Assembly (NCBI GenBank): GCA_964270895.1
Contig: OZ185441.1
Origin: Podarcis filfolensis
Taxonomy: Eukaryota
Strand: one strand, 5' to 3'
DNA: 64,000 nucleotides
The position numbers and the translations under genes are program-made. Under the pieces are notes generated by a model. It was not told the origin of the DNA and searched no databases. It saw only the letters and a program-made list of their open reading frames with translations. Positions 6,096-63,925 of the stretch are shown piece by piece (the first letter of the stretch is position 1; each line of letters begins with the position of its first letter).

Positions 6096-6263
6096 ATGAC
6101 CACCCTCAGTGAGGCAAATGCTAAGTTTGCCCTAGACTTTTACCGCCAGGTGGTCCATGAGCACCCATGCGAAAATGTCCTGTTTTCTCCTGCGAATCTC
6201 ACAGCAGCAGTTGGCCTGCTCCTCTATGCCTCTGGTTGTGATACAGCAGCTCATTTGGAAAAG
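6096..6263 (+). CDS. Gene A exon 2 (first coding exon)
   Basis: Acceptor CAG| at 6087, ATG 6096, MTTLSEANAKFALDFY...HLEK, donor GTAGGT; 168 bp. Confidence 0.93.
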
Positions 6264-12200: not shown

Positions 12201-15200
12201 TAATCACGTAACTCTAATTGTGAAGAGATTGGGAACAATTAACTATGTGCCCTGGACATGATTGACACATACATGGGCATCCTTTGATTTCTAATTCCTT
12301 AGTTACTCTCCACAATATGTGTGAACTGGCTCCATTGACACATAGGAATAAGTTACATTTAGGGCTCAGTCACATGTGCAATTAATCAAGCGATGAACAC
12401 ACAGAGCTCAGATGTTTAGATGTATGATATAATGACATTAGTTTTGTTCCTTGAAGGTGCCTGATTATGAGTGTGAGAAACCCGCAGCAGTCCACACTGC
12501 TTTCCACAGAATCCTTGCAGAACTCAATAAGTCCAGCACCAACTATGAGCTGAGCTTTGCCAACCGGCTCTACGGAGACCAGTCCATTGCTTTTCTTCAG
12601 GTAATTTCTGGACGGTTCATTATGCGGTCCAACTTTCAAAGAGTAGTGTCATATCTCCAAAACAGTTTGGTACAAATGCTTTACCTGGTTTGCTATTATT
12701 CAAAACTTGGATAAATTGATAATGCTTGTTGTTAGCTGCTTAATTCTAGACACAGAGAGACAGAACTTTCAGTAATGTGTTAAATAATTATTCCTGTTTT
12801 CATACAGAAATTCCTGTACTGTGCTCTGAAACTGTACTTGACTGAGGTGGATGGAGCTGACATTCACTATGCCCCAGAAGAAGTCCGGAGGCTGATAAAC
12901 CTTTGGGCTGAAGTCCAGACACATGGTATTATTATGAAGTGGGGTTTTTTTTGGGGGGGGGGAGGAGTAAGCTGTATGCCTGCAAGACCCTTCTCATTCC
13001 TGGATCCAGCAAGTGTTAACATCTAAGCAAGGATTCAAACTTATGGAATAGCTAGGCTAGCTTCCTAGTAATAGCCAAAGTAAAGGTAATAGCCAAAGTA
13101 AAGGTAAAGGTAAAGGTAAAGGGACCCCTGACTGTTAGGTCCAGTCGCGGACGACTCTGGGGTTGTGGCACTCATCTCGCTTTATTGGTTGAGGGAGCTG
13201 GCGTACAGCTTCCGGGTCATGTGGCCAGCATGACTAAGCCACTTCTGGTGAACCAGAGCAGCACATGAAAATGCTGTTTACCTTCCTGCTGGAGCGGTAC
13301 CTATTTATCTACTTGCACTTTGACGTACTTTTGAACTGCTGGGTGGGCAGGAGCAGGGACCGAGCAACGGGAGCTCTGGAATAACTTGTGATCTGATGCC
13401 ATCCCTTTGAAGCTAAGTGTATTAGCACACACTACAGTTAATGTAGCAGCAGCCATTTGCTTAGTTAGTATACTTTGTATATTAGCAATAAAAAGAAATT
13501 CAAGTTTGCAGGTTTTATTTCCCTTAAGCAAATAAAGGATTGCCTCTTCCTGAAGACATTAATGTTTCCCGCAATCCCATTTGTATATGGCTGGGCATGA
13601 TATCTTTTCCAGACTGAAACCTTCCTTTAATTATTAATGGGTCCATATACCTAAAGATCCAGAAGCCTTCTCGTATTTAATATTTATGTAGCGCCATCAA
13701 CGTGCAGGACACTTTACAGGGTGACGTAAGCAAATAGATAGATCCTTGCCTCAAAGAGGTCACAGTGCAAGGTCACATCCTTATTCAACTAAATGGTTGT
13801 GCCAGCAGAAGCCAGCACAATGCTTCCTGTGATGCAATAGGACTTTCCCTCTCTCCTCCCCACCATGTGCCCTTGTGTCCTTTCCAAATCTCCTTTAAAT
13901 CTGCAATATGCTTAAATGTATGGTATGGATGTGATCCCAATGTAAATATCTGTGAAGGAGACAACAGACATGGGTGACTCATCCTTGGTAACAAGGGATG
14001 GATGTGAGTCTTCCTTCCTGTACTACAAATAAACTACAGAAGGCCTTACCCCCAACATTGTTTTAAAGGTAAAATCCAGGATCTTCTCCCGAAGGACAGC
14101 TTTGATTGTCTCGCTCAACTTCTGCACGTGAACACTCTCTACTTTAAAGGGCAATGGGATGTGAAATTTGACAAAGAACTCACCAGAGTAGATAGATTCT
14201 ACTTGACTGAGGTAAGTTCCAGAAATATACCTGTTCCAGAAATATACCTAGAGGTTTGTATTTCCTTATGCTCTAAATGTTTTCAGAGCAAGAAGAGGAC
14301 TCTAAGAAATAGTGTCTATGTGGCACCATTGCTGGTTTCAGGTACTTTTCAAAGGTTACTAAAGCTCTGTTGGAACAACGGGGTCTTTATGAGCTACACA
14401 GGAATAATGCAACATAAACCACTCAACCTGGTTTCAAAGAAGATTCAACCACCACTTTCCTTGTTGATCATATGAGTTGGGAAGGAGAATATAAAACTGG
14501 TTCTGTATTGTTTTCTGAGATTTTCTAGCTCTGCAGAATTCTTTTGTTTTTAAACAAGAGAACGAGTGAACAAAGGAGGGTGCAAGAACATTAAAATTCC
14601 CTTGTTTCTAGACCAACTCATAAGCAGATCTTGGTGGTGAAGACTACAGTGTATTAACCATCCTAGCCCACCATTGTAAAAAGTGCCTGTATCAGCTCAT
14701 AAGCTGCACTCACAGTTTCAGTTTCTGTTGCCAGCAACTCCCTTCTGTATGTCCTTTTTCTCTGTAAGGCTCTTGCAAAATTCTTGTTGGTTGCACAACA
14801 TCTGTGTGGCCTTTTCTTAATAAGTCTGCCTCTGTTGTTTATCTCTAGTACAGGGGTAGCCAACATGGCGCCTTCCAGATTCTGTTCGATTCTTAACTCC
14901 CTGTGACCTCAGGTAGTCAGGGATGATAGGAGTTGTAGTCCACAACATCTGGAGGGGAACACTGGTTCTTTTCCACATTACTCAAATCTCCATTGCTTCT
15001 GTACATGAAGTTTACATGTTTAGTCATGATGGCTAAAAGCCACAGGTAGACCTATCTTCCATGATATTGGACCACTTCTTTTAAAACACCATATAAAATA
15101 GTGACTGTCCTATCATTGTGTGACAATGATGTCTGTGACTTTAGTAAAGTGGTATATGAATAAATATTTAAGAAATTTCTTCTGATCCTACTGCAAATCA

Positions 15201-18200
15201 ATTTAATTGGATGGGTCTATGTCAGGCTTCCTCAACCTTGGCCCTCCAGATGTTTTTGGCCTACAACTCCCATGATCCCTAGCTAGCAGGACCAGTGGTC
15301 AGGGATGATGGTAATTGTAGTCTCAAAAACATCTGGAGGGCCGATGTTGAGGAAGCCTGGTCTATGTTCTAAAAGAGTAGTTCCTGAGCTTTTTCTCCCA
15401 CAGACCACTTGAAAATTGCAGAGAGTATTGATTTTTCTGCCTGTTGTATCTATTGTATTGGTCTGTGCATAAACATTTCAGTTGTTGTTTTTCCTCACCC
15501 CACCCAACTAAACTAAGAACAAGAACATGCATAGGGAGACCCGTAAATTGTTGCTTGTGATTATAAGTTATAATGTGACTGGTGTTTTGAAATTTTCATG
15601 GGTGCCCATGATTTGAATTTGAATTTGTCAGCATCTTGAGCCAAACAGGTGTTTTGAAACTCTAAAAGGATTTCCGCGTGTCTGAATTGGTAAGCTTGAA
15701 TATGTCATTTCAGAGTTTTCTGCAGATCAGTTACTGACAAAAACAAAACTAATCCACAGAGCACAAAGATGAGTTGACTTTCTGTTTTCCTTCATATTTC
15801 TCACAGGACGTTTGCACAAATGTACAGCTGATGTACCGGAAGGGCCAGTATAATATCGGCACAATTGAGGGATGTGATGTGCAGATGCTTGAGATTCCCT
15901 ACAGAAACAATGAGCTGAGTTTGTTCATATTGCTGCCCAGAGACTGCGACCCTGAATCTCTTCAACAGGTAACATTCTGATGATTCCTCCCCCTTTGCAT
16001 AGGGCTGACATCTCCTTTACAAACAGGTTCTGAAACTGAAGTTGCTTGTAGCACTGACAAAACCAAAAAGCAAAGCCCCTCATTTTTGTGCCAGGCTTGG
16101 CAATCCAGAGGATCCCTATTGCTTGCCAGCTGTAGGGCTTGTTGTTGTCTTCCCCTGTTGTTGTCCACACCTGAAGAGGGCTCTGGGGCCTGAGCACACA
16201 CATTCGTTATAGCTCACTAAGCCAGGTCACAGTTTATGGTTCAAGTTTGAGAGTTAGGAAGATAGGTCGGCATCAGTGAAGTGCTTCTGCTAGTGCAAGG
16301 ACCTCTGTTTCTGCAACTGAACTTCTCCTCCCTCTCCTCCTTTGTGCAATCCAAAGTCCTTGCAACTGTGCAACTGTGCAATCCAAAGTCCTTGCCAACT
16401 GTGGTGATCACACAGGGTCCCCGGACGTTTGACGGTCTATTGATCCCTGTGCCACCACTGTGATTGCCTCTTCGCTGCCACCAACCCGTTTCTCTCGGGT
16501 ACACACGGAGTCCAGACAGTTGTTAACATTAACAAATAATCAAGTTTATTTTATAGGCATGAACAAGCTTATGGTTTCAGTTATTTTTTCTTGGCAGTTT
16601 CTTAATCTTAGTTTCTTTTACTGTCCTATACATTCCTAACAACTTCAAACTGATTATCCCAACTATCTATCTGACTCCACCTAACAATTCCTCTCACTCT
16701 CTCACAACACAACTCAACCAACCCACAGACTTATCCTCCCTCTTTCTTCTCCAACCCCCAACTCTCAACTGACTTCTAACTCTAAGTCCTCCTATCAGTT
16801 TCTCTCTGACCAATCACATCACACTCATTTAACTCTTTCCTTATGAGCCACCTAGGAGGCAAACGCCACACCAACCTATGTTTCTAACTCTCAAACCCTT
16901 GTAAAACTGCCTTCAACCAGGCCAGGTGATTTATCCAGCATTGCCCACTCAAGCGTGGCAGTGTTTCAAATGCATCATATACTATACAGTGGTACCTCAG
17001 GTTAAGTACTTAATTCGTTCCGGAGGTCCGTACTTAACCTGAAACTGTTCTTAACCTGAAGCACCACTTTAGCTAGTGGGGCCTTCTGCTGCTGCCGAGC
17101 CGCCGGAGCACAATTTCTGTTCTCATCTTGAAGCACTATTTCTGGGTTAGCGGAGTCTGTAACCTGAAGCGTATGTAACCCGAGGTACCACTGTACTGGA
17201 GAGCTTCTACACTCAAAGGGCAAGCTCTATCACTGAGCTGTGGTCACTGAGTTCCTGTTACACATTTCCTACACTTCCAACTGCAGTCAGTGTGAACCCT
17301 CCCAAGCTGGCTGCTGCTCGGTTATCAAATTCTTTTACTTTTGCCACCCTCCGACTGCAGTACCTCTGCTGTGCCACCCCTGCTCCCAACTGCATTACAT
17401 AGTCTCTCTTCTGGACCAATTTAGCTGTGGTCTGAGGTAAATGGACCCAGCACAACCAGGGAATCGCAAACTGGTCCCACCAACTTTGAGACTCTAGAAA
17501 TGTGTCACAAGGCACCATTTGACTGTTTATAAATTTCAACCTTGTATGAGCAGCCCCCGCCTGGCTGATGTCATGTCATGTTACAAATTATGCATGCGTT
17601 GAATCTCAAATGTCAGTATGACATTTTTGAAACCACTGAAAAATAATTGGGGGTATGATGTGCTAGAAAAATATTATTGTGTCAATGTTTGTTGCCAAAT
17701 TTATGTCATGCGGTTATTTGCGTGGACAGGCGGAGTCCCCCAAACCCTGGGCACCCCCCCATGTGGAATAACGACTCAAGACAACGTGCTATGGGATTAA
17801 ATTGGCCACAACTTTATTATATTACAGATGTGGGTAGACCTGGGCTCAGGCATTGGGCGTTATCCCTCCCCAGTCCCCAGCTGAGGATCTAGAAAACATC
17901 AGGGTTATCCAGTGTGTGTGGGGGGGATGGGCCAGCTCTGGAGAACATATGTTCAAGCAGAGATAGCCGCCCCCGTTACGCCGCCGTCACAGGGGAGAGC
18001 AATGACGACCTCTCGGCGTACGGTCAAAGACTCCCCTCAGAAACCCCTTTAATAGGGAACTCTGGTATCGCCGCTGCAAAGAGGAAGGGGGTGTGGGTCA
18101 CCGCTGCACGCCCCTCCCATTCAGGAAGATAGACTAAGGGATTCCGCCCAAGGCTTGATACCGCCACCCGAGACCGCACAGTTGCAGTCTACACCTGAAA

Positions 18201-18884
18201 AGACCCTTCATCATCCGCCAACCAATCCGACAGGCCATGCCTGATGTCACTCAGCCAACGCTCATTACCAAGGCTCGATAGGTGCCCACCACCGGGCCTG
18301 AATAGCTCCTTCATGTATACTTTAATGCTGGGATGCTTCACGACCCGACCTCCCATGCACGTGGTTGCCGAGCGCAACGCCCTATTGACTTTTTCAATAG
18401 CGTAGTTAAGTCTGGTGGATTTGATGTTAATCTGGTTTCTTTTATTGATCAGTGTATCAATCACATCACTGTCATTTCTTTGCACCTCCAGCTGGAAGAT
18501 GGACTTAGCTACGAGCAACTGCTCAACTGGTCCTGCATTCTGAAGCCAGAAGAAGTTGAGGTGGTTATCCCGAAATTCAGCTTAGAAAAGAGCATCGAAG
18601 TTAATGCATACTTAGACCTGTCACCTCTGACTGATCCCGAGAAAGCAGATTTATCTGGCGCAACCACAACAGAAGGTGTGGCTCTGACTCAGCTTGTCCA
18701 CGATACTTTCATCGAGATTGATGAGGAGGGCGGTGAAGAAGCAGAGGCCCCCGCATGCCCAAGGGATAGGCGCCCACGTCAGGAACCAAAGGCATTCCTG
18801 GCTAACCATCCTTTCTTGTATTTTGTCCTGCACAAATGCACCCAAAGCCTTATTGCCTTTGGTAAATTTGCTAGACCAGAATAA
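6096..18884 (+). CDS. Serpin gene A: clade B (ov-serpin) family, predicted non-inhibitory, about 456 aa, 8 coding exons
   Basis: Coding exons 6096-6263, 9495-9626, 10567-10677, 12457-12600, 12808-12925, 14069-14211, 15807-15968, 18492-18884; all GT-AG and in frame. Serpin motifs NVLFSP, SFANRLY, INLW..QT.GKI.DLL, VNTLYFKGQW, LEIPY, IPKFSLE, FLANHPFLYF..FGKFARPE. The 168/118/143-bp exons match ovalbumin-type gene structure; no signal peptide. Confidence 0.9.
6632..6780 (+). mobile_element. tRNA-Lys-derived SINE with CR1-type tail
   Basis: GATAGCTCAGTTGGTAGAGCATGAGACTCTT head; TTCCAACTCTACAATTCTATGATTCTAT tail. Confidence 0.7.
7030..7232 (+). mobile_element. Degenerate tRNA-derived SINE
   Basis: GCTAAGTGGTAGAGTACATG head; GATGGAC...AAGGCATCTTCCTACATTCCT tail. 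Confidence 0.55.
7586..8591 (-). mobile_element. L1/Tx1-like LINE internal RT fragment in gene A intron 2
   Basis: ORF 7600-8580 with GTRQGCPISPLLF and AFADDL; 18-bp TSD AGAAAG(G/A)TCTAACTCTTT at 7568-7585 and 8592-8609; same family as 33410-35988. Confidence 0.92.
9495..9626 (+). CDS. Gene A exon 3a (end of helix C and Arg-rich CD loop)
   Basis: ttccattccag|ATA CTT CAC TGG: ILHWDELKECAAPVRRRYFRTRRSYGRLEDRLRTPLYFRTSPTV, homologous to VLHWDEVKEC in genes C/D; donor GTATTT is weaker, so the 3' end is less certain. Confidence 0.8.
10567..10677 (+). CDS. Gene A exon 3b (extra CD-loop exon)
   Basis: tttgttttcattttag|GGC...GAG|gtaatg, 111 bp, phase 0-0, GLRSHDIKEGLRLGAAPRGSPTDSRQRPESPCCPPHE; its end resembles PEPRCPRR of exon 3b in C/D. 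Confidence 0.7.
10793..11445. repeat. Unclassified AT-rich interspersed repeat; related pieces near 1570-1720, 41470-41590, 45345-45640, 52040-52445, 60465-60790
   Basis: Recurring blocks such as GGAGAACTAAATTTAAGATT and AATTTGCACTAAAATGCT seen on both strands; boundaries approximate. Confidence 0.55.
11676..11915 (+). mobile_element. Squam3-like SINE
   Basis: Same consensus, (CTT)n tail. Confidence 0.8.
12457..12600 (+). CDS. Gene A exon 4
   Basis: VPDYECEKPAAVHTAFHRILAELNKSSTNYELSFANRLYGDQSIAFLQ; AG/GT boundaries; 144 bp. Confidence 0.92.
12808..12925 (+). CDS. Gene A exon 5
   Basis: KFLYCALKLYLTEVDGADIHYAPEEVRRLINLWAEVQTHG; 118 bp, phase 0-1. Confidence 0.93.
13095..13376 (-). mobile_element. 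Sauria SINE, 5'-truncated
   Basis: (AAAGGT)n tail and reverse-complement body. Confidence 0.8.
14069..14211 (+). CDS. Gene A exon 6
   Basis: KIQDLLPKDSFDCLAQLLHVNTLYFKGQWDVKFDKELTRVDRFYLTE; 143 bp, phase 1-0. Confidence 0.93.
15223..15359. mobile_element. hAT-type MITE
   Basis: TIR CAGGCTTCCTCAAC, perfect 8-bp TSD GTCTATGT. Confidence 0.85.
15807..15968 (+). CDS. Gene A exon 7
   Basis: DVCTNVQLMYRKGQYNIGTIEGCDVQMLEIPYRNNELSLFILLPRDCDPESLQQ; 162 bp. Confidence 0.92.
16400..16870 (-). mobile_element. Solo LTR in gene A intron 7
   Basis: TG...CA termini, 5-bp TSD CCAAC; second copy at 51441-51925; AATAAA on the minus strand. Confidence 0.8.
16987..17193. mobile_element. Tc1/mariner-type MITE
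   Basis: TA|CAGTGGTACCTC...GAGGTACCACTG|TA. Confidence 0.88.
17704..18395. mobile_element. CpG-rich LTR-like insertion, boundaries uncertain
   Basis: Starts TGTCA, CpG-rich, TTTATT motif; absent from the 188-bp intron 7 of gene C; no TSD found. Confidence 0.4.
18492..18884 (+). CDS. Gene A exon 8 (RCL and C-terminus)
   Basis: LEDGLSYEQLLNW...IDEEGGEEAEAPACPRDRRPRQEPKAFLANHPFLYFVLHKCTQSLIAFGKFARPE*; 393 bp. Confidence 0.93.
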   Translation: MEDGLSYEQLLNWSCILKPEEVEVVIPKFSLEKSIEVNAYLDLSPLTDPEKADLSGATTTEGVALTQLVHDTFIEIDEEGGEEAEAPACPRDRRPRQEPKAFLANHPFLYFVLHKCTQSLIAFGKFARPE

Positions 18885-25396: not shown

Positions 25397-26440
25397 AGTA
25401 CAATTCTTATCAGCCCCATCCAGCAAGGCTAATGGTCAGGGGTGATGTAATCCAACAATATGGAGGGCCACAGGTTCTCCATTGCTCCTTTATAATGATG
25501 AGATTAGCTAGGATTTTTGCACAGGAATTACAGCTACCCATTTTGAGTTTCAAGTCGAAGTAATGACTTTTTTGGGGAAAGTGAGTCCCTATTTGTAAGG
25601 ATACACATCTTTCCCTTTTTCTTTTTTTAAACAACCCTGTTCATGAGCATAGTTCCCTCCTCAGCCTTTGCACCAATTTTTATTCCAATTACTACATCTT
25701 TTTCTTTTTCTTTTTCAGTTAATTATATGGGTTTAACTCAGACAGTTAGAAACCATGTATTTAAGGGCTAATGTCAAGATGTTACATGGACACTGTTAAA
25801 ATTGTTCATGAAAAGCACCTCCCATTTCAGCTCAGCCCTAGTGGAAATTACACAGAGATTTCCCTCCCTTCAACTGGAAGATTGACAGCTATTTTGTGTT
25901 TGTTGTTCAGTCTGTGATATGAGAATACAAATGCTTAGTTCATCATATACAGACGCTGTTTGTGAGAAAACAAACCATACCTTTTGCTTGTCATACTCTG
26001 AAAGGAGGAGGCTGAAAAAACTAGACTTGGAGAATTCATTTTTTTTAAAAAAATTGTTCTACTGCTGTTTTTCCAGGGCTGAAGGATTTCGCAATGACTT
26101 CCCTCAGTGAAGCAAATGCTAAGTTTGCCACTGACTTCTTCCATCTGCTGAGAAAAGAACCCATGTGGAAATATCCTGTTTTCTCCAGTTAATCTCTCCA
26201 CTGCCCTTCACCTGCTGCTTTACGGATCACGGCATGATACCAAAGCTGAAATTGAAAAGGTAGGATGCATATTTATTTCCCAGTCTTTCTCTAACATCAT
26301 GAGAAGCCAGTAAGAGAAACCGAGAGGACATGAGTTACCAAAGTCACCTTATGAATTTCATACCCATGCAGAGATTTGGACCCTGGTTTCCTCACATGAG
26401 TGGATGAAGCTGCCTGTTATATTGGTCCATCTAGTCTAGA

Positions 26441-44911: not shown

Positions 44912-45079
44912 ATGACCACCCTGCCTGAAGCCAATGCTAAATTTGGAGTCGACTTTTTCAAAGTGTTGACCACTGAGCACCCATGCGACAACCTCGTGTT
45001 CTCCCCTGCGAACCTCACCGCAGGCCTGGGCCTACTCGCTTATGCATCTGGTTGTGAACAAGCAGATCAGATTGAGAAG
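44912..45079 (+). CDS. Gene C exon 2
   Basis: MTTLPEANAKFGVDFFKVLTTEHPCDNLVFSPANL...QIEK; 168 bp. Confidence 0.93.
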
Positions 45080-48000
45080 GTGGGTCTAATCAAGCAGTAG
45101 AGATGCAGCCTTCAGACTGGGCTCATCATTAGCAGATACCTTTCCATCACCGGTCATATTTGATACAAGTTGAGAAATGATCTCACTGTGGCTTGATCCA
45201 GTAATAAGCCCAGTCAACGTCTCTGCACAAAATCCCATAAATGTGCAGAGATCAAAGAATATTGCATCACTAGGCATGGAGTAGAAATTTGGTTGAATGG
45301 AATGGAAATCTTCCAAATTTGTAGTTTTCAAAACAATGTATGAGCCAAAAACAGCTCTTTTTTAATAGATTTGTACTTACCTGTACTTATTTTGTAAAAG
45401 TAATATTTACAAAAAATCATATATTAGGGGGAAATGTGCATAAAAATGAAGATATTAGTGAAAGTAGCATAACACATGCATTATACTGGGGAAATTACTT
45501 GCAGAAATGTGTACATTAGTAAAAGAAAATGCATCTAAAAATGGGTTTATTAGGAGAATTTCACACTAAAATGCTTGTGATTAAAAAAATAGCAAACTGT
45601 TGGAGAACTAAATTTAAGATTCGATTCCTTCAGGTCTCATCCTATATGAGATTTGTTGCTATCATCTCAAGGCAGAACCATAGATTGCCTAAAGTTTGTT
45701 TCAAAGATTAGTATGCAGGAAGATATCCATCCTGCCAATGTCACATATGATCTAAGAGTCATGTGAATCGTCCCTAATATACATATCAGGATAATAGGTG
45801 CTGCTGTTATAATATTGCCTGTGCAACTGAAGCAATGTTCCAATTTCATTCAAGGTCCTGCATTGGGATGAAGTGAAAGAGTGTGACAAACCCAGAAGCA
45901 GGAGCCTGGGACATTCAACAACCAGACTAAGAAGGGTATGTAGAAGAACGCTTGGATAAAGGTGTATTCCTCCCCTGCCCATAGAACCCAGCTTGCATAT
46001 TAGTATTATCTCCTGTTATCTCAACATCAAATCCATGCCTGTTGGGAAGAAACATATCTGAAGGAAGAACAGAGGCAGCGAGCAGTCAATCAATGAAAGC
46101 GCAAATGTCACTTTCACAAATACATTTGAAACAAAATTTTCAGATGTGAAGTTAACTGCCCCTCCTTAAGTTGAATGGGGAATACAGCCTGCAATTATTT
46201 GTGGTATATTTGTGGCTTCTCATTTGTGGTATCAGTGCAACATTGGGAAAACTATAGAGTTCTATGAGTCTACTTATGGATACGTACATTTTGTAACTTC
46301 ATTGCAGGCACAAGAAAAAGTTGAAACCTGCCCCAGACCAAGACCGCGTCCTGAGCCAACCAAGCCTGAAGCAACTCGCCCCAGACCAAGACCCCGTCCT
46401 GAGCCAACCAAGCCTGAACCAACTTGCCCCAGACCAAGACCCCGTCCTGAGCCAACCAGGCCTGAGCCAACTTGCCCCAAACCAAGACCCCGCCCTGAAC
46501 CAGAGCAACCTAAACCTTGTGACAAGAGACGAGTCATTCACCGCCCAGCTCCTTGCCCTGAGCCCGAGCCCGAGCCCGAGCCACGTTGTCCTAGACGCGT
46601 AAGTTGTGAAACATCTGGAGAGTTTCATCTAGATGATTTTTTCTTTATTTTTTATTTAAAATTTAGGGGGCTGTCTCTAAGCATTCTACATGGTACACAC
46701 AACTTGTGATAAAATCGACAGGAAAGTAGGAATGAAACCGCTAAATTCTTGCTTAGATGTGAAGTTCACTGGGTGATGTTGAGTCAGTCACCATCAACCC
46801 CCATCTAACGTTGCTGTGAGCATAAAATTGAGTAAATCACAAGAAAGGTGTGCTGGGCTGCCTGCAGGGATTCAGATGTGATAAACGTTTACTTCAGAGT
46901 AGGCATTCCTGAGTTCAGTATAACTTTCAAGCATTCCTGCCTGAGATAAGGGTATAGATTTTCTTTCTCACAAGACAAACCCTTAAGAAGCAGCCAGGTG
47001 TCATGAGAATTAACCTTCTATTTTGAATCCTTAGGATGTTCCCTGCTACGAGTGTGAGGAGCCTGAAGGCATCCATACAGCATTCAGCAAAATCCTTGCG
47101 ACTCTTAATGAGCCCAGCAGCAACTATACCCTGAGCTTTGCCAACAAACTCTATGGAAACAATGACATTGCCTTCATCCAGGTAATGCTAATTTTGGCTC
47201 CTATGGGTGCTTCACTGTACTGTGAGAACCAAGTGCACATTGCAACCTGCAATTGACTGTATTCTACATAAATGGGCTCATCATCTACTGGTGTCTGTCA
47301 AAGCTGTGCCTCATTCCCAGGCCATCAGAGGAAATGATAACAATTACTTGCTCTACAAAGTGCTTTACCTACAAAATCCAGTGATGGTGGTGGTGGTTGC
47401 TGTTGCTTTTATTATTATTATGTATTATATTTATACCCCACTCATTGGGAGGAATTGGGAGGAACTGAATTTCTGAGGGCATTAGGCAGCAATTGGAAAA
47501 TTCCCAAATGAGAAAGGTGATTATGGATAATATATGGATCCAATGTTTTCTTGTTCTGTTCAGAAATTCCTTTACTGTGCTCTGAAACTGTACTTGACTG
47601 AAGTGGAGAACGCTGATCTGCATAATGCCCCAGAGGAAGTAAGGAGACTCATCAACCTTTGGGTCGAAGTCCAGACACATGGTAAGACCACAGCACACTC
47701 CAATGACTTCTTGATATAACTTTCATGACAGGGAGGTCATGATTTTTATTCTGCAAACTAGGAACCAATTAAATCTTACTGAACCGACAATCAGTTAAGA
47801 GCCCATTGTGGAATAGCCTCTACTCTCTTCCAAACCAGAGGAAAGGTCAGATTATCAAAACAAATGAAACTGGTGCCCATAATATTTTGTTTATTAAAAC
47901 ATTTAAATACCTCCATTCGGCTGCAAAGGACCACTCAGGGTATAATTAAGTACTTCATCTATCAAGTTGCTTAATTTATCTTCTATAAATAGTGAGTTAG

Positions 48001-48658
48001 AAGTTTTATGCTAACTCATACAGTGTAATATTATAACTAAAATCTGAATATATATATTTTTTATTTTTAAGAAAACCTACTATATCCATTTCTTTCCCAG
48101 GTAAGATCAAGGACCTTCTCCCCAAGGACAGCTTTGACTGCCTTGTTCAGCTCCTGCTGGTGAATGCTCTCTACTTCAAAGGACAATGGGAAGTGAAATT
48201 TGACAAAGAGCTCACAGAAGAAGCTCCCTTTTACCCTCATCATGCAGATGAGGTGAGTTAGAAACATATTCCTAGCTTCCTTGCTTCTTTTGTGCAGAGA
48301 CAATGTACCTTGTAACTTCCAGAATACACGTTTAGTGTTGGAGTTGAGTTGCCCCAATGAGGTCTTGATGGAGGTCACTTGAAACACTTGGTGCAAGGAA
48401 GGCTCTGCAATGCTGGACGGTCATCACCCCTTTTAGTTGAAGATGATGGCCCAAAACTAGAGTTAGCTGTCCTAGAGCCCCACTGCTAACAATGGGGTTT
48501 AATTTGGCCACTTGATACCAGTCCAATTGATTTCAATTTAGTAGGATTGTTGCTGAAATTACAAAAGAGAATAATCTGCTGTCTCCCTTTTCTTTTTCTC
48601 TGGGAGGTGTTTTTTGTTTTGTTTTTTTTGTTTTGCAATGCCGAATCTCATGCTGTCA

Positions 48659-48690
<32 letters not shown>

Positions 48691-49505
48691 ACTTCCCAAA
48701 GAAAACTAAGTTCCTTCTCTCTTTTTAAATATTTCCTTTTTTCCTTTTCTTCACAGAAGGAATGCCACAGCGTGCAGCTGATGCACAGGAAGGGGGTCTA
48801 CAATGCAGGGACAATTGACCTATGCGACGTTCAAGTCCAAGTTGTTGAGATCCCCTACAAGAACAATGAACTGACCTTCGTTCTGCTGCTGCCAGTAGAC
48901 TGCAGTGCAGAAGCTCTTGAACAGGTAAATGGTCTTTCCATTCCTATGATACTGTCCATGGCCTTATTCACCTTATCCATCTCTGGCCCTCAATTTCAAT
49001 AATACTGGTGTGGAAAAAGTCTGCTGATATATTTTTCTTATTGTATTCACCCTTGTTTTGATTCAATCTGGGATTGGAATGATATCACTATAACTTCTAT
49101 GTGTTCCTCTAGCTGGAAGATGGACTTAGCCACGAGCATCTGCTTGACCTGTCCTGTCATCTGAAGGCCATTGAGGTGGATTTGGCCATTCCCAAGTTCA
49201 GCTCAGAGAAGAGCATTGAAGCCAACGAATACCTGAATCTGCCGGATCTGACTGACCACGAAAAGTCCGATTTCTCTGGAGCAACCACAACAGAAGGCGT
49301 GGCTCTGACTCAGCTGGTCCATGATGCTGCTATCGAGATTGATGAGGAGGGTGGTGAAGAACCAGAGCCAGTCCCTTGCCCCAAAGATAGGCGTCCACGT
49401 CGGGAACCTGTGGAGATTCGGGCTGACCGTCCTTTCCTCTATTTCGTCCAGCACAATTGCACCCAGAGCATCATTGCTCTCGGTAGATTTGCTAAGCCAG
49501 AATAA
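44912..49505 (+). CDS. Serpin gene C: clade B serpin with Pro/Arg/Cys repeat CD loop, predicted non-inhibitory, about 505 aa
   Basis: Coding exons 44912-45079, 45855-45935, 46308-46598, 47035-47181, 47564-47681, 48101-48252, 48757-48924, 49113-49505; all GT-AG, continuous frame, serpin core motifs as in gene A. Confidence 0.92.
45855..45935 (+). CDS. Gene C exon 3a
   Basis: caag|GTC...AGG|gtatgt; VLHWDEVKECDKPRSRSLGHSTTRLRR; 81 bp. Confidence 0.88.
46308..46598 (+). CDS. Gene C exon 3b (repeat-containing CD-loop exon)
   Basis: ttcattgcag|GCA...CGC|gtaagt; 291 bp, 97 aa, AQEKVETCPRPRPRPEPTKPE...PEPRCPRR. Confidence 0.88.
46326..46517 (+). repeat. Coding tandem repeat, 4 x 48 bp (T[C/R]P[R/K]PRPRPEP.[K/R/Q]P..)
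   Basis: Four in-frame 16-codon units are directly visible. Confidence 0.93.
47035..47181 (+). CDS. Gene C exon 4
   Basis: DVPCYECEEPEGIHTAFSKILATLNEPSSNYTLSFANKLYGNNDIAFIQ; 147 bp. Confidence 0.93.
47564..47681 (+). CDS. Gene C exon 5
   Basis: KFLYCALKLYLTEVENADLHNAPEEVRRLINLWVEVQTHG; 118 bp. Confidence 0.93.
48101..48252 (+). CDS. Gene C exon 6
   Basis: KIKDLLPKDSFDCLVQLLLVNALYFKGQWEVKFDKELTEEAPFYPHHADE; 152 bp (3 codons longer than gene A). Confidence 0.93.
48757..48924 (+). CDS. Gene C exon 7
   Basis: KECHSVQLMHRKGVYNAGTIDLCDVQVQVVEIPYKNNELTFVLLLPVDCSAEALEQ; 168 bp. Confidence 0.93.
49113..49505 (+). CDS. Gene C exon 8 (RCL and C-terminus)
   Basis: LEDGLSHEHLLDL...IDEEGGEEPEPVPCPKDRRPRREPVEIRADRPFLYF...LGRFAKPE*; 393 bp. 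Confidence 0.93.
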   Translation: MEDGLSHEHLLDLSCHLKAIEVDLAIPKFSSEKSIEANEYLNLPDLTDHEKSDFSGATTTEGVALTQLVHDAAIEIDEEGGEEPEPVPCPKDRRPRREPVEIRADRPFLYFVQHNCTQSIIALGRFAKPE

Positions 49506-51925: not shown

Positions 51926-52621
51926 GGGGGGGAATTCACATAGTGAATTAAATAAAAAGTTGAGAGATGAACATACTTTCCTTTGCAATGCTGAGGTAAT
52001 CTCTAAGAAAGCAGAAAGCTTTTTGTTCTTAGTAGGGATGAGTTGTCCTGCCTGTTTTGGTTCTGCCAGTTTCTCATATTTCCAGTCTTAAACTCCACTT
52101 TGTTTCTGCAGCAATTTTCAATTTCTTTTTTTTTTTTAAGTGAAAATTTGCCAGCATTTTAGTGTGAATTTGTCCTACATTTTGTTTGTTATTTTGCTAC
52201 TATACACATTTTTTGCAAACATAATTTCCCTAATAAAATTCATTTTTGTATGTTGTTTCCACTAATATACGCATTTTTGTACACACTAGTTGCCTGGTTA
52301 ACTGCATTGCAAAATTCAGAGAAATGCAAATTTCAAAGAGTACCTGTGTTTTGGTTCAAATATTGTTTCAGAAAGTGCAAAGTTGGTAGGTTTATGTTTA
52401 AATGAGAAGTTTATCAAATTTCTCCTCCATTCCAACAGCTTAGCAAAATACAATAGGAACATTCCAAGTCAATTCAGAATCTGGGCAACGTGTATCAATC
52501 TAGTAAGGAATTTTCAGTCATGGCCGGGCGTGCAGCACTTTGATGTGGCAGAGGTTGGATCGGAGATCCAAATGCCAAGCTACATATTTGACTCAACATA
52601 GCACACAAAGTATCCATTTCC

Positions 52622-53264
52622 TAGAAGAAGGAACATTTTGTCATATGTGGTGGGAATGTAAAAAGGTGAAAAGCTTCTGGGAGATGATATATAATGAGAT
52701 GGAAAAAATGTTGAAATATACATTTATAAAGAAACCAGAAGCATTCTTACTGGGCACTGTAGGAAGTGATATAAATAGAAAGGACTGTAAGTTGTTTTTA
52801 TATGCAACAACGGCAGCAAGATTGTTATTGGCCCAAAAATGGAAGCAAGAAGAACTACCGACGAAAGAAGAATGGAGGATGAAATTAATGGACTATGCAG
52901 AATTGGATAAACTAACAGGAAGGATTCGAAACCGTCGGAACCAGAAATTCACAGAAGACTGGAGTAAATTTACAGACTATTTGAAAAGTATTTGTGATGA
53001 TCAGAGTATGCTTGTAGGTCTGCAAGTAGTTTTGTGAGGAGTATTATTGGAATTATTGCAAAAATGGATAAGGGGAAGGATGGTTAGTTAAAACAATTAA
53101 AGGCAATATGAATTTAAGAAATGCATAAAAGGTGGTCAAAATGGTGGATCATAAGAGGTGCTGATGGAAGTCCAAAAAAAAAAAAAAAAGATTATATAAG
53201 TGATGAAGTTCTGTGGTATGTATTGTAATTTATATGCTAAAATTAATAAAAATTATTATATTAA
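52622..53264 (+). mobile_element. L1/Tx1-like LINE 3' fragment
   Basis: EEGTFCHMWWECKKVKSFW...TTAARLLLAQKWK; AATAAA 53245-53250; 15-bp TSD AAAGTATCCATTTCC (52607-52621 and 53265-53279). Confidence 0.9.
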
Positions 53265-60019: not shown

Positions 60020-60187
60020 ATGACCACCCTGCCTGAAGCCAATGCTAAATTTGGAGTTGACTTTTTCAAAGTGTTGACCACTGAGCACCCATGCGACAAC
60101 CTTGTGTTCTCCCCTGTGAACCTCACCGCAGGCCTGGGTCTCCTCGCTTATGCATCTGGTTGTGAACAAGCAGATCAGATCGAGAAG
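60020..60187 (+). CDS. Gene D exon 2
   Basis: 168 bp, MTTLPEANAKFGVDFF...QIEK. Confidence 0.92.
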
Positions 60188-63100
60188 GTGGGTCTAATCA
60201 AGCAGTAGAGATGCAGCCTTCAGACTGGGCTCATCATTAGCAGATACCTTTCCATCACCGGTCATATTTGATACAAGTTGAGAAATGATCTCACTGTGGC
60301 TTGATCCAGTAATAAGCCCAGTCAACGTCTCTGCACAAAATCCCATAAATGTGCAGAGATCAAAGAATATTGCATCACTAGGCATGGAGGAGAAATTGGG
60401 TTGAATGGAATGGAAATCTTCCAAATGGAATCTTCCAAATTTGTAGTTTTCAAAACAATGTATGAGCCAAAAACAGCTCTTTTTAAATAGATTTGTACTT
60501 ACCTGTACTTGTTTTGTAAAAATATTTACAAAAAATCATATATTAGGGGGAAATTTGCATAAAAATGCAGATATTAGCGAAAGTAGCATAACATGCATTG
60601 TATTGGAGAAACTGCTTGCAAAAATGTGTACATTAGTAAAAGAAAATGCATCTGAAATGGCTTTATTAGGAGAATTTCGCACTAAAATGCTTGTGAATTT
60701 TCATGTGGATCTTTTTTAAAAAAATAAATAAAAAATAGCAAACTGTTGCAAAATGTGGAGAACTAAATTTAAGATTTGATTCCTTTAATTCTCATCCTAT
60801 ATGAGATTTGTTTCTATCATCTCAAGGCAGAACCATAGATTGCCTGAAGTTTGTATGTATGTTTGGATCATTAATTTAGCATGATTCAGATATCATGGGC
60901 CAAACATGTTGAATCATTTCAAAGAGTAGTATGCAGGAAGATATCCATCCTGCAAATGTCACATATGATCTAAGAGTCATGTGACATACATATCAGGATA
61001 ATAAGTCCTGCTGTTATATTATTGCCTGTGCAACTGAAGCAATGTTCCAATTTTATTCAAGGTCCTGCATTGGGATGAAGTGAAAGAGTGTGACAAACCC
61101 AGAAGCAGGAGCCTGGGACATTCAACAACCAGACTAAGAAGGGTATGTAGAAGAACGCTTGGAGGTGTATTCCTCCCCTGCCCAAAGAACCCAGCTTGCA
61201 TATTAGTATTATCTCCTGTTATCTCAACATCAACTCCATGCCTGTTGGGCAAAAACATCTCTAAAGGAAGAAAAGGGGCCTTGAGCACTGAATCAGCTCT
61301 TAAAAGTGCAAATGTCATTTTCATAAATATATTTGCAACAAAATATTTGGATGAAGGAGGATTAAAGCATCAATATATGTGTCTGATATCAGTGCAACAT
61401 CAGAACAAGGATTGGCTGATGTTTGAAAAACAAATTTGGTTTCATGCCACCATTTCTTATTCCTTTATTGTAAATGGGCTGGAAATGAACTACCTATGGA
61501 TACAGACATTTTATAACTTCATTGCAGACCCAAGGTGCTGGTGGTGCCAAACCGAGACCCCGTCCTGAACCTAAACCTTGTGACAAGAGACGAGTCATTC
61601 ACCGCCCAGCTCCTTGCCCTGAGCCCGAGCCCGAGCCACGTTGTCCTAGACGCGTAAGTTGTGAAACATCTGGAGAGTTTCATCAAAATAATAATAATAA
61701 TCTCTCACACACACAAATAGACATTTAGGGGGTTATCTCTAAGTATTCTAAATGATACCACACAACTTGTGATAAAATCCACAGGAAAGTAGGAATGAAA
61801 CCGCTAAATTCTTGCTTAGATGTGAAGTTCACTGGGTGATGTTGAGTCAGTCACCATCAACCCCCATCTAACATTGCCGTGAGCATAAAATTGAGTAAAT
61901 CACAAGAAAGATGAGCTGGGCTGCCTGGAGGGATTCAGATGTGATAAATGTTTACTTCAAAGTAGGCATACCTGAGGTCGACTTTCAAGCAAGCTTTGTT
62001 GCTTAAGCTAAGTTTGTAAGTTTTCTTTCTCACAAGAAATACCCTTAAGAAGATAAGTAGCCAGGTGTTGTGAGAATTAACCTCCTTCTTTTTGAATCCT
62101 TAGGATGTTCCTTGCTATGAGTGTGAGAAGCCTGAAGGAATCCATACGGCATTCAGCAAAATCCTTGCGACTCTTAATGAGCCCAGCGCCAACTATACTC
62201 TGAGCTTTGCCAACAAGCTCTATGGAAACAAGGACATTGCCTTCATCCAGGTAACTCTAATTTTGGCCCCTATGGGTGCTCCACTGCACTGTGAGAACCA
62301 AGTGCACATTGCAACCTGCTAGTGACTGTATTCTACCATAAATGGATTCATCATCTACTGGTGTCTGTCAAACTTGTGCCTCATTCCCAGGCAACCAGAG
62401 AGATCTGCTACGGTAATGATTATCTGCTCTATGAAAGTCTCCACCTGCAAAATTTAGTGTTCTGAAACTACAAAGAGGCACTGAATCTTTAAGGGAATTA
62501 GGCAGTACTCAAATGCGAGAGAATACTCTGGACATTTTCTGTTTTGTTATATATTTACTGATACATGGATCCAATGTTTTCTTGTTCTGTTCAGAAATTC
62601 GTTTTCTGTGCTCTCAAACTGTACTTGACTGAAGTGGATGGTGTGGATTTCCATAATGCCCCTGAGGAAGTGAGGAGACTCATCAACCTTTGGGTTGAAA
62701 CCCGTACACATGGTAAGATCACAGAATGCACTAGTGACCTCTTCCTGACATAACTTTCATGATAGGGAGGTCTCCGGTCTTTGTTCTTCTCATGCTGGTT
62801 CAAAAAACCAGTTAAATCTTTCTTATTCTCCAAGAATAAGCTAAGAGCCCACTGTGACCTCTGCTTTCCTTCAAACATGAGGAAAGGTAGGATTGATTTG
62901 TTGCAATAAACTGGTGCCCATACTATTTTATTTGCTTATAAAAACAGTTAAATGCTCCCATTCTGTTGCAAAGGACTACTTAGGGTATAATTAAGTACTT
63001 TATTCAAGCTGTTCCATTTATTCTCCATTAACCGTGAACTACAAATTGTATGCCCCCATTCCCCAAAAACCCATCGTAACAATTTCTTTGCCAGGTAAAA

Positions 63101-63925
63101 TCAAGGACCTTCTCCCCAAGGACAGCTTTGATTGCCTTGTTCAGCTCCTGCTGGTGAATGCTCTCTTCTTCAAAGGACAATGGGAAGTGAAATTTGACAA
63201 AGAGCTCACAGAAGAAGCTCCCTTTTACCCTCATCATGCAGATGAGGTGAGTTAGAAACGTATTCCTAGCTTCCTTGCTTCTTTTGTGCAGAGACAATGT
63301 ACCTTGTAACTTCCAGAATACACATTTAGTGTTGGTGTTGAGTTGCCCCAATGAGGTCTTGATGGAGGTCACTTGAAACACTTGGTGCAAGGAAGGCTCT
63401 GCAATGCTGGACGGTCATCACCCCTTTTAGTTGAAGATGACGGCCCAAAACTAGAGTTAGCTGTCCTAGAGCCCCACTGCTAACAATGGGGTTTAATTTG
63501 GCCACTTGATACCAGTCCAATTGATTTCAATTTAGTAGGATTGTTGCTGAAATTACAAAAGAGAATAATCTGCTGTCTCCCTTTTCTTTTTCTCTGGGAG
63601 GTGTTTTTTGTTTTGTTTTTTTGTTTTGCAATGCCGAATCTCATGATCTGAAAGAAAGAAAGAAAAAAAGAAAGAAAGAAAGAAAGAAAGAACTTCCCAA
63701 AGAAAACTAAGTTCCTTCTCTCTTTTTAAATATTTCCTTTTTTCCTTTTCTTCACAGAAGGAATGCCACAGCGTGCAGCTGATGCACAGGAAGGGAGTCT
63801 ACAATGCAGGGACAATTGACCTATGCGACGTTCAAGTCCAAGTTGTTGAGATCCCCTACAAGAACAATGAACTGACCTTCGTTCTGCTGCTGCCAGTAGA
63901 CTGCAGTGCAGAAGCTCTTGAACAG
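60020..63925 (+). CDS. Serpin gene D (close paralog of C; last exon lies beyond the window)
   Basis: Coding exons 60020-60187, 61062-61142, 61528-61653, 62104-62250, 62595-62712, 63095-63246, 63758-63925; open frame so far. Confidence 0.9.
61062..61142 (+). CDS. Gene D exon 3a
   Basis: 81 bp, VLHWDEVKECDKPRSRSLGHSTTRLRR. Confidence 0.88.
61528..61653 (+). CDS. Gene D exon 3b (short form)
   Basis: 126 bp, TQGAGGAKPRPRPEPKPCDKRRVIHRPAPCPEPEPEPRCPRR, ttcattgcag| and |gtaagt. Confidence 0.87.
62104..62250 (+). CDS. Gene D exon 4
   Basis: 147 bp, DVPCYECEKPEGIHTAF...DIAFIQ. Confidence 0.92.
62595..62712 (+). CDS. Gene D exon 5
   Basis: 118 bp, KFVFCALKLYLTEVDGVDFHNAPEEVRRLINLWVETRTHG. Confidence 0.92.
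63095..63246 (+). CDS. Gene D exon 6
   Basis: 152 bp, KIKDLLPKDSFDCLVQLLLVNALFFKGQW...HADE. Confidence 0.92.
63758..63925 (+). CDS. Gene D exon 7
   Basis: 168 bp, KECHSVQLMHRKG...EALEQ, same protein sequence as gene C. Confidence 0.92.

Follow-up and report, generated by a model that had tools for sequence, protein, structure and literature searches.

A proline- and arginine-rich tandem-repeat exon in the CD loop of squamate clade-B serpins

Introduction

The loop between helices C and D (CD loop) of clade-B serpins, or ov-serpins, bears secondary functions in several members of the family: transglutaminase glutamines and a redox switch in PAI-2 (SERPINB2), an AT-hook and a nuclear localization signal (NLS) in MENT, and an NLS in bomapin (PMC1308813). 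The present work concerns an exon at positions 46308–46598 (+ strand) of a 64,000-nucleotide stretch from the lizard Podarcis filfolensis (contig OZ185441.1 of assembly GCA_964270895.1; hereafter the window), which places a tandem repeat rich in Pro, Arg, Glu and Cys in the CD loop of a serpin encoded by a gene here called gene 1. Serpin CD loops are known for such secondary functions; in the papers found, a selectively maintained tandem-repeat arm is undescribed, and full-text searches of the literature returned no description of this repeat or of the peculiarities of the clade that carries it.

The best precedent in function for an ov-serpin arm that can be cross-linked is PAI-2. It is a clade-B protein with a long exposed CD loop that derives from an extra exon and contains the transglutaminase Gln and redox-switch Cys residues (PMC1308813). 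The PAI-2 loop, however, comprises about 33 residues from one exon, is neither tandemly repeated nor Pro-rich, and belongs to a working inhibitor with a consensus hinge, whereas the lizard loop is encoded by two exons, reaches about 130 residues (about 300 in Anolis), contains a 16-residue repeat, and is carried by a protein whose hinge lacks the inhibitory consensus. MENT, an avian SERPINB10-type protein, also has a basic functional insertion in the CD loop (AT-hook and NLS) and a second, non-protease activity (PMC1308813), but it is inhibitory, and its M-loop is not a Pro-rich tandem repeat.

The closest solved structures, by both sequence and fold, are those of SERPINB3/B4 (SCCA1/2), which share the gene architecture and a CD-loop exon beginning VLH[FW]D; the lizard proteins carry the NCBI name 'serpin B3-like'. 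SERPINB3 differs in having an inhibitory hinge, a near-neutral core poor in Cys, and only about 20 residues in its CD loop. Maspin (SERPINB5) and ovalbumin, both non-inhibitory ov-serpins, resemble the lizard protein in having hinges that lack the inhibitory consensus, but neither has a repeat arm; maspin is not known to have a CD-loop exon.

Outside the serpins, the arm recalls the small proline-rich (SPRR)/cornifin proteins from the epidermal differentiation complex (EDC) in its Pro, Cys, Lys/Arg and Glu composition, its PEP and CP motifs and its short tandem repeats. Cornification proteins are generally of low complexity and cross-linked through Cys and Gln/Lys (PMC11431283). The lizard unit differs from that of SPRRs in that it spans 16 residues rather than 8–9, has more Arg than Lys, and lacks the Gln/Lys-rich head and tail; moreover, an SPRR is encoded by an EDC gene with a single coding exon, whereas the lizard exon is internal to a 505-residue serpin in a tandem serpin-B cluster. 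The (EP)n/(KP)n rods, of which procyclin and the TonB spacer are examples, also have EPEPEPEP stretches beside runs of basic X-Pro, for which a rigid, extended shape is expected. This likeness is one of physical type alone, and the proteins and organisms are unrelated.

The repeat exon of gene 1

Gene 1 is the middle one of three tandem serpin paralogs in the window (genes 0, 1 and 2). It consists of eight coding exons on the + strand, with AG/GT at every boundary, and encodes a protein of 505 residues; the repeat exon is the third coding exon. A 478-residue model without the canonical CD-loop exon was abandoned in favor of the 505-residue one upon comparison with the Podarcis muralis 'serpin B3-like' protein P0166 (A0A670IAP9, 503 residues), which is 96% identical to the gene 1 protein. 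Several P. muralis paralogs of 503 residues are 96–97% identical to it. The features of gene 1 are the following:

44912–45079, + strand: first coding exon, with ATG and GT donor; 56 residues, helices A–C, ending ...ADQIEK; matches Pfam Serpin positions 1–51
45855–45935, + strand: canonical CD-loop exon; 27 residues, VLHWDEVKECDKPRSRSLGHSTTRLRR, 81 nucleotides, AG/GT, phase 0/0
46308–46598, + strand: extra CD-loop exon (repeat exon); 97 residues, four 16-residue units and a Cys/EP tail, phase 0/0
46326–46517, + strand: array of four units of 48 bp (16 codons) each, in codon register
46518–46598, + strand: non-repeat tail CDKRRVIHRPAPCPEPEPEPEPRCPRR; DNA as in the gene 2 tail apart from one 6-nucleotide (EP) indel
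47035–47181, + strand: exon that contains DVPCYECEEPEGIHTAFSKIL..., where the CD loop ends, and helix D
47564–47681, + strand: exon
48101–48252, + strand: exon
48757–48924, + strand: exon with a Pfam Serpin match
49113–49505, + strand: last exon, which encodes the reactive-centre loop EIDEEGGEEPEPVPCPKDRRPRREPVEIRADRPF and contains the stop codon

The canonical CD-loop exon is found in P0166 and is 100% identical to its copy in gene 2; its first residues, VLHWDE, are aligned to VLHFDQ in SERPINB3. The repeat exon lies between an AG and a GTAAGT, and its 291 nucleotides (97 codons) translate as AQEKVE, the four units TCPRPRPRPEPTKPEA, TRPRPRPRPEPTKPEP, TCPRPRPRPEPTRPEP and TCPKPRPRPEPEQPKP, and the tail CDKRRVIHRPAPCPEPEPEPEPRCPRR. 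Tandem Repeats Finder reports a period of 48 with 3.7 copies, 92% matches and a score of 293 at 46325–46502, and a GCCCGA microrepeat (4.5 copies) at 46555–46582. Units 1–3 differ from one another at 3–5 nucleotides, and unit 4 differs from them at 11–13. The module can be written as C-P-[RK]-P-R-P-R-P-E-P plus T-[KR]-P-E-P-T. The codon at 46377–46379, in unit 2, is CGC (Arg), whereas TGC (Cys) stands at this place in both P. muralis (L001) and Zootoca (L005), so that one of the periodic Cys is missing from this copy. The tails of genes 1 and 2 are near identical, although the introns beside them are only 85–89% identical.

The 97 residues of the exon include 35 Pro (36%), 19 Arg (20%), 14 Glu (14%), 7 Thr, 6 Lys (Arg:Lys 19:6), 6 Cys (6%) and 2 Gln. 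The net charge is +10 with an isoelectric point (pI) of 10, and both CD-loop exons together reach a net charge of +13. In each unit a basic block, RPRPRP, comes first and a mixed block second. Pro is the next residue after 18 of the 25 basic residues in the exon, and these include all 18 Arg and Lys within the units; the array thus represents a single 69-residue piece that is not cut by trypsin, and the arm would be close to invisible to tryptic proteomics. R-x-R-R motifs of the convertase type occur in the gene 1 protein at residues 80–83 (RLRR, at the end of the canonical CD-loop exon) and 469–472 (RPRR); the former is not conserved in iguanians.

A sequence-only reading of this DNA had described four 16-residue units and a tail at 46308–46598, and the translation agrees exactly; the composition counts likewise agree with its description of a Pro/Arg/Glu/Cys-rich segment. 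Its picture of a charge-alternating arm does not hold: basic blocks are succeeded by mixed ones, and the exon is net basic. The length of about 130 residues that it gave for the CD loop is right only if the 27 residues of the canonical exon, which lies outside its coordinates, are counted, and not for the repeat exon taken alone.

Placement in the serpin fold

The exons flanking the insert match Pfam Serpin positions 1–51 and 58–97. P0166 aligns to SERPINB3 residues 1–65 and 72–390, with the insert at P0166 residues 66–181 approximately, and residue 1 aligns to SERPINB3 residue 1, so that there is no N-terminal extension. No signal peptide was recognized, as judged by eye and alignment rather than by a predictor. 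An AlphaFold2 model of P0166, computed with a 43-sequence alignment, has helix C at residues 48–57 and helix D at 191–203, with a predicted local distance difference test (pLDDT) score of about 90 in the core. Over residues 66–184 the pLDDT falls below 50, and the model shows no secondary structure there. The Pfam positions, the SERPINB3 alignment and the model all confirm that the exon is placed in an ov-serpin CD loop, as had been proposed before from the sequence, and the model predicts disorder in the arm. A Pro-rich, disordered arm of about 130 residues is therefore predicted between helices C and D.

Membership in the serpin superfamily is clear: P0166 matches PF00079 with an E value of 9.8e-86 and adopts a native-type serpin fold in the model, to which native SERPINB3 is the best structural match (template modelling (TM) scores of 0.92–0.94 for SERPINB3/B4), with SERPINB1 and maspin at about 0.9. 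All top matches in the PDB belong to clade B, the tree described below groups the protein with B3/B4/B7/B11, and the canonical CD-loop exon is at the SERPINB3 position. With the last exon alone, maspin is the best solved match (E 2.6e-18). Maspin orthology was rejected on the full-length protein, with E values of 3.7e-73 for SERPINB3/4 versus 1.1e-56 for maspin, which ranks below SERPINB3, SERPINB1, MENT and OVAX, and on the tree.

Selection on the repeat exon

Exons and introns of gene 1 are both about 97.5% identical to the nearest P. muralis copy (L001), a divergence of only about 2.5%. Because this copy is equally close in exons and introns, selection was measured on Zootoca and Anolis. 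The Zootoca vivipara ortholog (L005:3501–3791) has 97 codons, four units and intact AG/GT sites. Nonsynonymous (dN) and synonymous (dS) divergence between the two repeat exons amount to 0.057 and 0.187, respectively, a ratio of 0.31, to be compared with 0.20 for the serpin core. The introns beside the exon are 86–90% identical to those of Zootoca. The homologous exon of gene 2 (61528–61653) differs from its Zootoca ortholog by six nucleotide changes, six of them synonymous and none nonsynonymous; the dN/dS ratio of gene 2 is 0.20 versus gene 1 and 0.09 versus the Zootoca ortholog.

In Anolis carolinensis and Anolis sagrei, an exon of 786 nucleotides (262 codons) at the same position contains about 15 units of CPRPRQHQEPSRPEPT. 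The arrays of the two species differ with dN 0.031 and dS 0.296, a ratio of 0.11, and among the codon pairs that differ between units of the A. carolinensis array, 269 are synonymous and 67 nonsynonymous. Other frames of the Podarcis–Zootoca and Anolis pairs give dN/dS of 0.69–2.2 or stops (at least 2 or stops for the Anolis pair), and the frame read here has the lowest dN/dS among those that stay open. Splice sites are intact in all copies examined. By these comparisons, the repeat exon is under purifying selection in this frame. The sequence-only reading had named as its alternative a recent, non-conserved minisatellite free of purifying selection; such a young MINISATELLITE is ruled out by the dN/dS ratios (0.31 against Zootoca, 0.11 in Anolis), the equal lengths of the arrays and the shared module.

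Distribution and annotation of the exon

The module C-P-[RK]-P-R-P-x-P-E-P, with a Cys spacing of 11 or 16, was found in Podarcis, Zootoca, Sceloporus, Pogona and Anolis; judging from this distribution, it is old and common to lacertids and iguanians. Homologous exons are present in Lacertidae, Iguania, one snake (Candoia) and geckos. Those of Candoia and the geckos have the same xQEK start and a different Pro-rich content. In the geckos Euleptes europaea (P0003) and Gekko kuhli (P0186) the same exon contains a 15-residue unit, KPRDDRHQAQEPEHT, with eight copies in P0003, and this distinct repeat implies that expansion took place at this site more than once.

The number of units varies, with four in gene 1 and one in gene 2; both states exist in Zootoca in the same gene order. 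For Zootoca itself, three units are found in an older model and four in a newer assembly. Across squamates the arm ranges from one to about 15 units, or about 40 to 260 residues. The sequence-only reading knew of no ov-serpin with such a repeat, but dozens of predicted squamate serpins have homologous arrays, of up to about 15 units in Anolis, under names such as 'serpin B3-like' or 'leukocyte elastase inhibitor-like'. Orthologs are thus already in public databases, and the arm fits a known class, the function-bearing CD-loop insertions of clade-B serpins. In two Phrynosoma platyrhinos models (P0001 and P0152), the homologous exon is read in the +1 frame (KPAPDQD...VLSQP). Annotation pipelines thus skip the exon or use a wrong frame, a practical concern together with the near invisibility of the arm to tryptic proteomics.

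The likeness to SPRR proteins that the sequence-only reading had pointed out stands for composition and not for homology. At E values up to 10, neither the exon nor the Anolis array has a match to any Pfam family, cornifin/SPRR included; the sole sub-threshold match of the exon family is the trypanosome procyclin PF05887, with 13–15 bits versus a cut-off of 100. Among proteins of 53–170 residues (5.8 billion clusters), none matches the exon at E ≤ 0.01. In the 277–880-residue band the CD-loop region is matched by squamate serpins only (the search did not cover 170–277 or more than 880 residues). Homology to SPRR or other EDC proteins was accordingly rejected, there being no Pfam, small-protein or non-serpin match in the size bands searched, and the repeat period is 16.

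The host serpin clade

In a tree computed by maximum likelihood from 46 sequences, after trimming of the CD-loop columns and with maspin left out, the host serpins fall in a squamate-only clade with a support of 100 in the Shimodaira–Hasegawa-like approximate likelihood-ratio test (SH-aLRT) and a stem length of 0.64. The clade is sister to turtle 'serpin B3' proteins, with mammalian B3/B4 and B7/B11 further out; it is thus set off by its long stem and is not nested in mammalian B3/B4. Within the clade, the gene 1 protein falls together with P0166 of P. muralis, and that of gene 0 together with P0171/P0172 of Zootoca.

The inhibitory hinge consensus is absent in every aligned member of the squamate clade, nearly all 32 of which read EEGGEE[AP]E[AP], whereas 11 of 11 outgroup hinges are of the EEGTEAAAA type (EEGTEAAAAT). 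In gene 1, positions P15–P9 read G-G-E-E-P-E-P in place of the inhibitory consensus G-T/S-E-A-A-A-A/T. Charged residues and Pro at P14–P9 prevent insertion of the serpin loop, and by this rule the members of the clade would be non-inhibitors; the protease-inhibitor function of the host serpin has probably been lost. The expansion of serpins B3/B4 in lizards has been read as a gain of further cathepsin inhibitors (PMC12400805), a reading that the hinge sequences contradict.

Other parts of the protein are also modified. Most members of the clade have the motif CP[RK]DRRPRRE in the reactive-centre loop (49340–49440 in the window). The median net charge of the core is −23 in the squamate clade versus +1 in the outgroups, and the median number of core Cys is 10 versus 3, about three times as many, with clade-specific conserved Cys columns, one of them within the reactive-centre loop. 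The body of the gene 1 protein has a net charge of −33 and a pI of 4.7. From the alignment and the tree, the host clade was remodelled on the squamate stem branch in hinge, loop motif, acidity of the core and Cys content. The squamate-specific clade, the altered hinge and the acidic, Cys-rich core had escaped the sequence-only reading, and they change the functional reading of the arm.

A cross-linkable tether and alternative functions

The reading that we favor, and to which we give an even chance, is that an acidic serpin without inhibitory function carries an extended, basic arm studded with Cys, which serves as a tether for multivalent binding or cross-linking. The serpin body would act as a stable globular block that has given up protease trapping, while the arm would form an extended tether of the polyproline-II type, shielded from trypsin-like cleavage by its Arg/Lys-Pro pairs. 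The regularly spaced Cys and basic blocks would establish multivalent electrostatic contacts with acidic partners, among which might be the acidic bodies of neighboring molecules, and these contacts could then be fixed by disulfides and possibly by transglutaminase at Lys and Gln. The protein would thereby become a building block of a cross-linked matrix, and the copy number (1, 4, about 15) might set reach and valency. Because both CD-loop exons are in phase 0/0, the arm can be switched on or off by splicing. As the site of action, our favored guess is the cornifying epidermis, with eggshell or oviduct as an alternative. If cross-linking is confirmed, a protease-inhibitor fold will have been turned into a matrix building block in squamates, and a gene family from outside the EDC will join the toolkit of reptile skin or eggshell.

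Several observations weigh against this reading. Inclusion of the exon is inconsistent among gene models: P. muralis models have both CD-loop exons, the newest Zootoca models (381 and 408 residues; L005 and L004) skip one or both of them although they are intact and were kept in an older 489-residue model, and Pogona has predicted isoforms of each kind. No transcript-derived or Logan protein was present among the matches of the protein search, whose clusters contain genome-annotation and UniProt/UniParc accessions only, so that inclusion of the exon is argued from gene models and selection. Transglutaminase substrates are not conserved between lineages, with 6 Lys and 2 Gln in the repeat exon of Podarcis and 30 Gln with almost no Lys in the Anolis array. 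Clade-B serpins are usually cytosolic, a compartment where disulfides do not form. Proteins of the clade were not found in the searched parts of the sand-lizard femoral-gland proteome supplements, and the arm is hard to see by tryptic proteomics. Lastly, the loss of inhibition is deduced from the hinge sequence. On the comparative evidence, the segment is a true cassette exon that is translated as part of a clade-B serpin.

A bolder version of the favored reading is possible, though we consider it doubtful: the squamate ancestor would have put the serpin fold to structural use, as an acidic, Cys-rich, non-inhibitory globule with a length-tunable basic polyproline tether that polymerizes head-to-tail into a matrix, locked by disulfides or transglutaminase, of the scaled integument or of some other cross-linked material specific to squamates, for example the parchment eggshell. 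The protein would then be of the cornification type, located outside the EDC and convergent with SPRRs.

The alternatives account for the periodic Cys and the remodelled body less well than cross-linking does. The one that survives best, although we regard it as rather unlikely, is a MENT-like function in which the Pro/Arg arm and the DRRPRRE motif would bind DNA or RNA, or act as an NLS, and so organize chromatin in terminally differentiating cells. The net charge of +10 of the arm, with a KRR cluster, would suit such a role, as would the five basic residues among eight in the reactive-centre loop and the fact that the protein, like nucleocytoplasmic ov-serpins, has no recognizable signal peptide; the CD loops of MENT and bomapin indeed bear an AT-hook and NLS (PMC1308813). 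The AT-hook core (R-G-R-P) is, however, missing, there being no GRP in residues 57–186 of gene 1, and every unit contains two Glu. The very acidic body (−33) should repel nucleic acid, the periodic Cys and the Cys-enriched core are left unexplained, and MENT has kept the inhibitory hinge that the squamate clade lacks.

It is unlikely that the arm acts as a docking scaffold for SH3, WW, EVH1 or profilin, recruiting signalling or cytoskeletal partners with a valency given by copy number. The exon does contain seven PxxP and six class-I-like [RK]xxPxxP motifs, the arm is disordered and exposed in the model, and the exact peptide is under purifying selection, but the conserved periodic Cys have no role in such ligands, Anolis units read QHQ for PRP with the loss of part of the PxxP pattern, and the acidic, Cys-rich, non-inhibitory body is not accounted for.

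PRPRPRP strings are reminiscent of mammalian Pro/Arg-rich antimicrobial peptides, and the protein might be imagined as a precursor from which a peptide of this type is freed at flanking basic sites. In gene 1 the arm is bounded by the RLRR that closes the canonical exon and by CPRR, and the stretch between them resists trypsin-like cleavage. The R-x-R-R flanks are not conserved, however (...MFK and ...CPER in Anolis; ...RLK and ...CPER in Sceloporus), two acidic residues per unit are unusual for such peptides, and no signal peptide or secretory evidence was found, which makes this role very unlikely.

Finally, the proposal that the exon is mostly skipped and non-functional, a tolerated low-complexity expansion annotated by homology, appears hardly tenable: it would agree with the omission of the repeat exon from the newest Zootoca models, with the variable copy number (four versus one between paralogs, three versus four between two Zootoca assemblies or annotations) and with exons no better kept than introns against the close P. 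muralis copy, at a divergence of only about 2.5%, but it is opposed by dN/dS of 0.11–0.31 in the one frame only, by the gene 2 exon with no nonsynonymous versus six synonymous changes, by array lengths that are equal between the two Anolis species and between Podarcis-like and Zootoca copies, and by intact splice sites in every examined copy and a module conserved between lacertids and iguanians.

The surrounding serpin locus

The window contains no N, and an Rfam scan of its 64 kb returned no match. Over 17 kb, introns counted, the window and L001, a genomic locus of P. muralis, share about 95.7% identity. Each of genes 0, 1 and 2 has two CD-loop exons. The features of the two flanking paralogs are:

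6096–18884, + strand: gene 0, an intact paralog of 456 residues
6096–6263, 9495–9626, 10567–10677, 12457–12600, 12808–12925, 14069–14211, 15807–15968 and 18492–18884, + strand: exons of gene 0
10567–10677, + strand: second CD-loop exon of gene 0, non-repetitive, GLRSHD...CCPPHE, GLRSHDIKEGLRLGAAPRGSPTDSRQRPESPCCPPHE
60020–63925, + strand: gene 2, partial, running off the end of the window
60020–60187, 61062–61142, 61528–61653, 62104–62250, 62595–62712, 63095–63246 and 63758–63925, + strand: exons of gene 2
61528–61653, + strand: homolog of the extra exon in gene 2; 42 residues, TQGAGGAKPRPRPEPKPCDKRRVIHRPAPCPEPEPEPRCPRR, with a single PRPRPEP unit followed by a tail of the gene 1 type

The second CD-loop exon of gene 0 is kept in Zootoca P0172, and its terminal Cys-Pro motif is like that of the gene 1 exon. 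Between genes 0 and 1, a relic of a serpin first coding exon is located at 26082–26262 (+ strand), in two frames with stops inside; no other exon of this copy was found.

The exons of gene 1 (44912–48924) and gene 2 (60020–63925) are a mosaic in their identity, which amounts to 100% for the canonical CD-loop exon, 99.4% for 48757–48924 and 84.7% for 47564–47681, with introns 85–89% identical. This pattern suggests gene conversion among the tandem paralogs. Also situated between the serpin genes are a 176-residue open frame (…FLEEGTFCHMWWECKKVKSFWEMIYNEMEKMLKYTF…) at 52507–53034 (+ strand) and a recurring frame beginning SLSAPLTSQSVCCGGGRERR at about 50874 and about 58961 (+ strand), all of which look like fragments of interspersed repeats.

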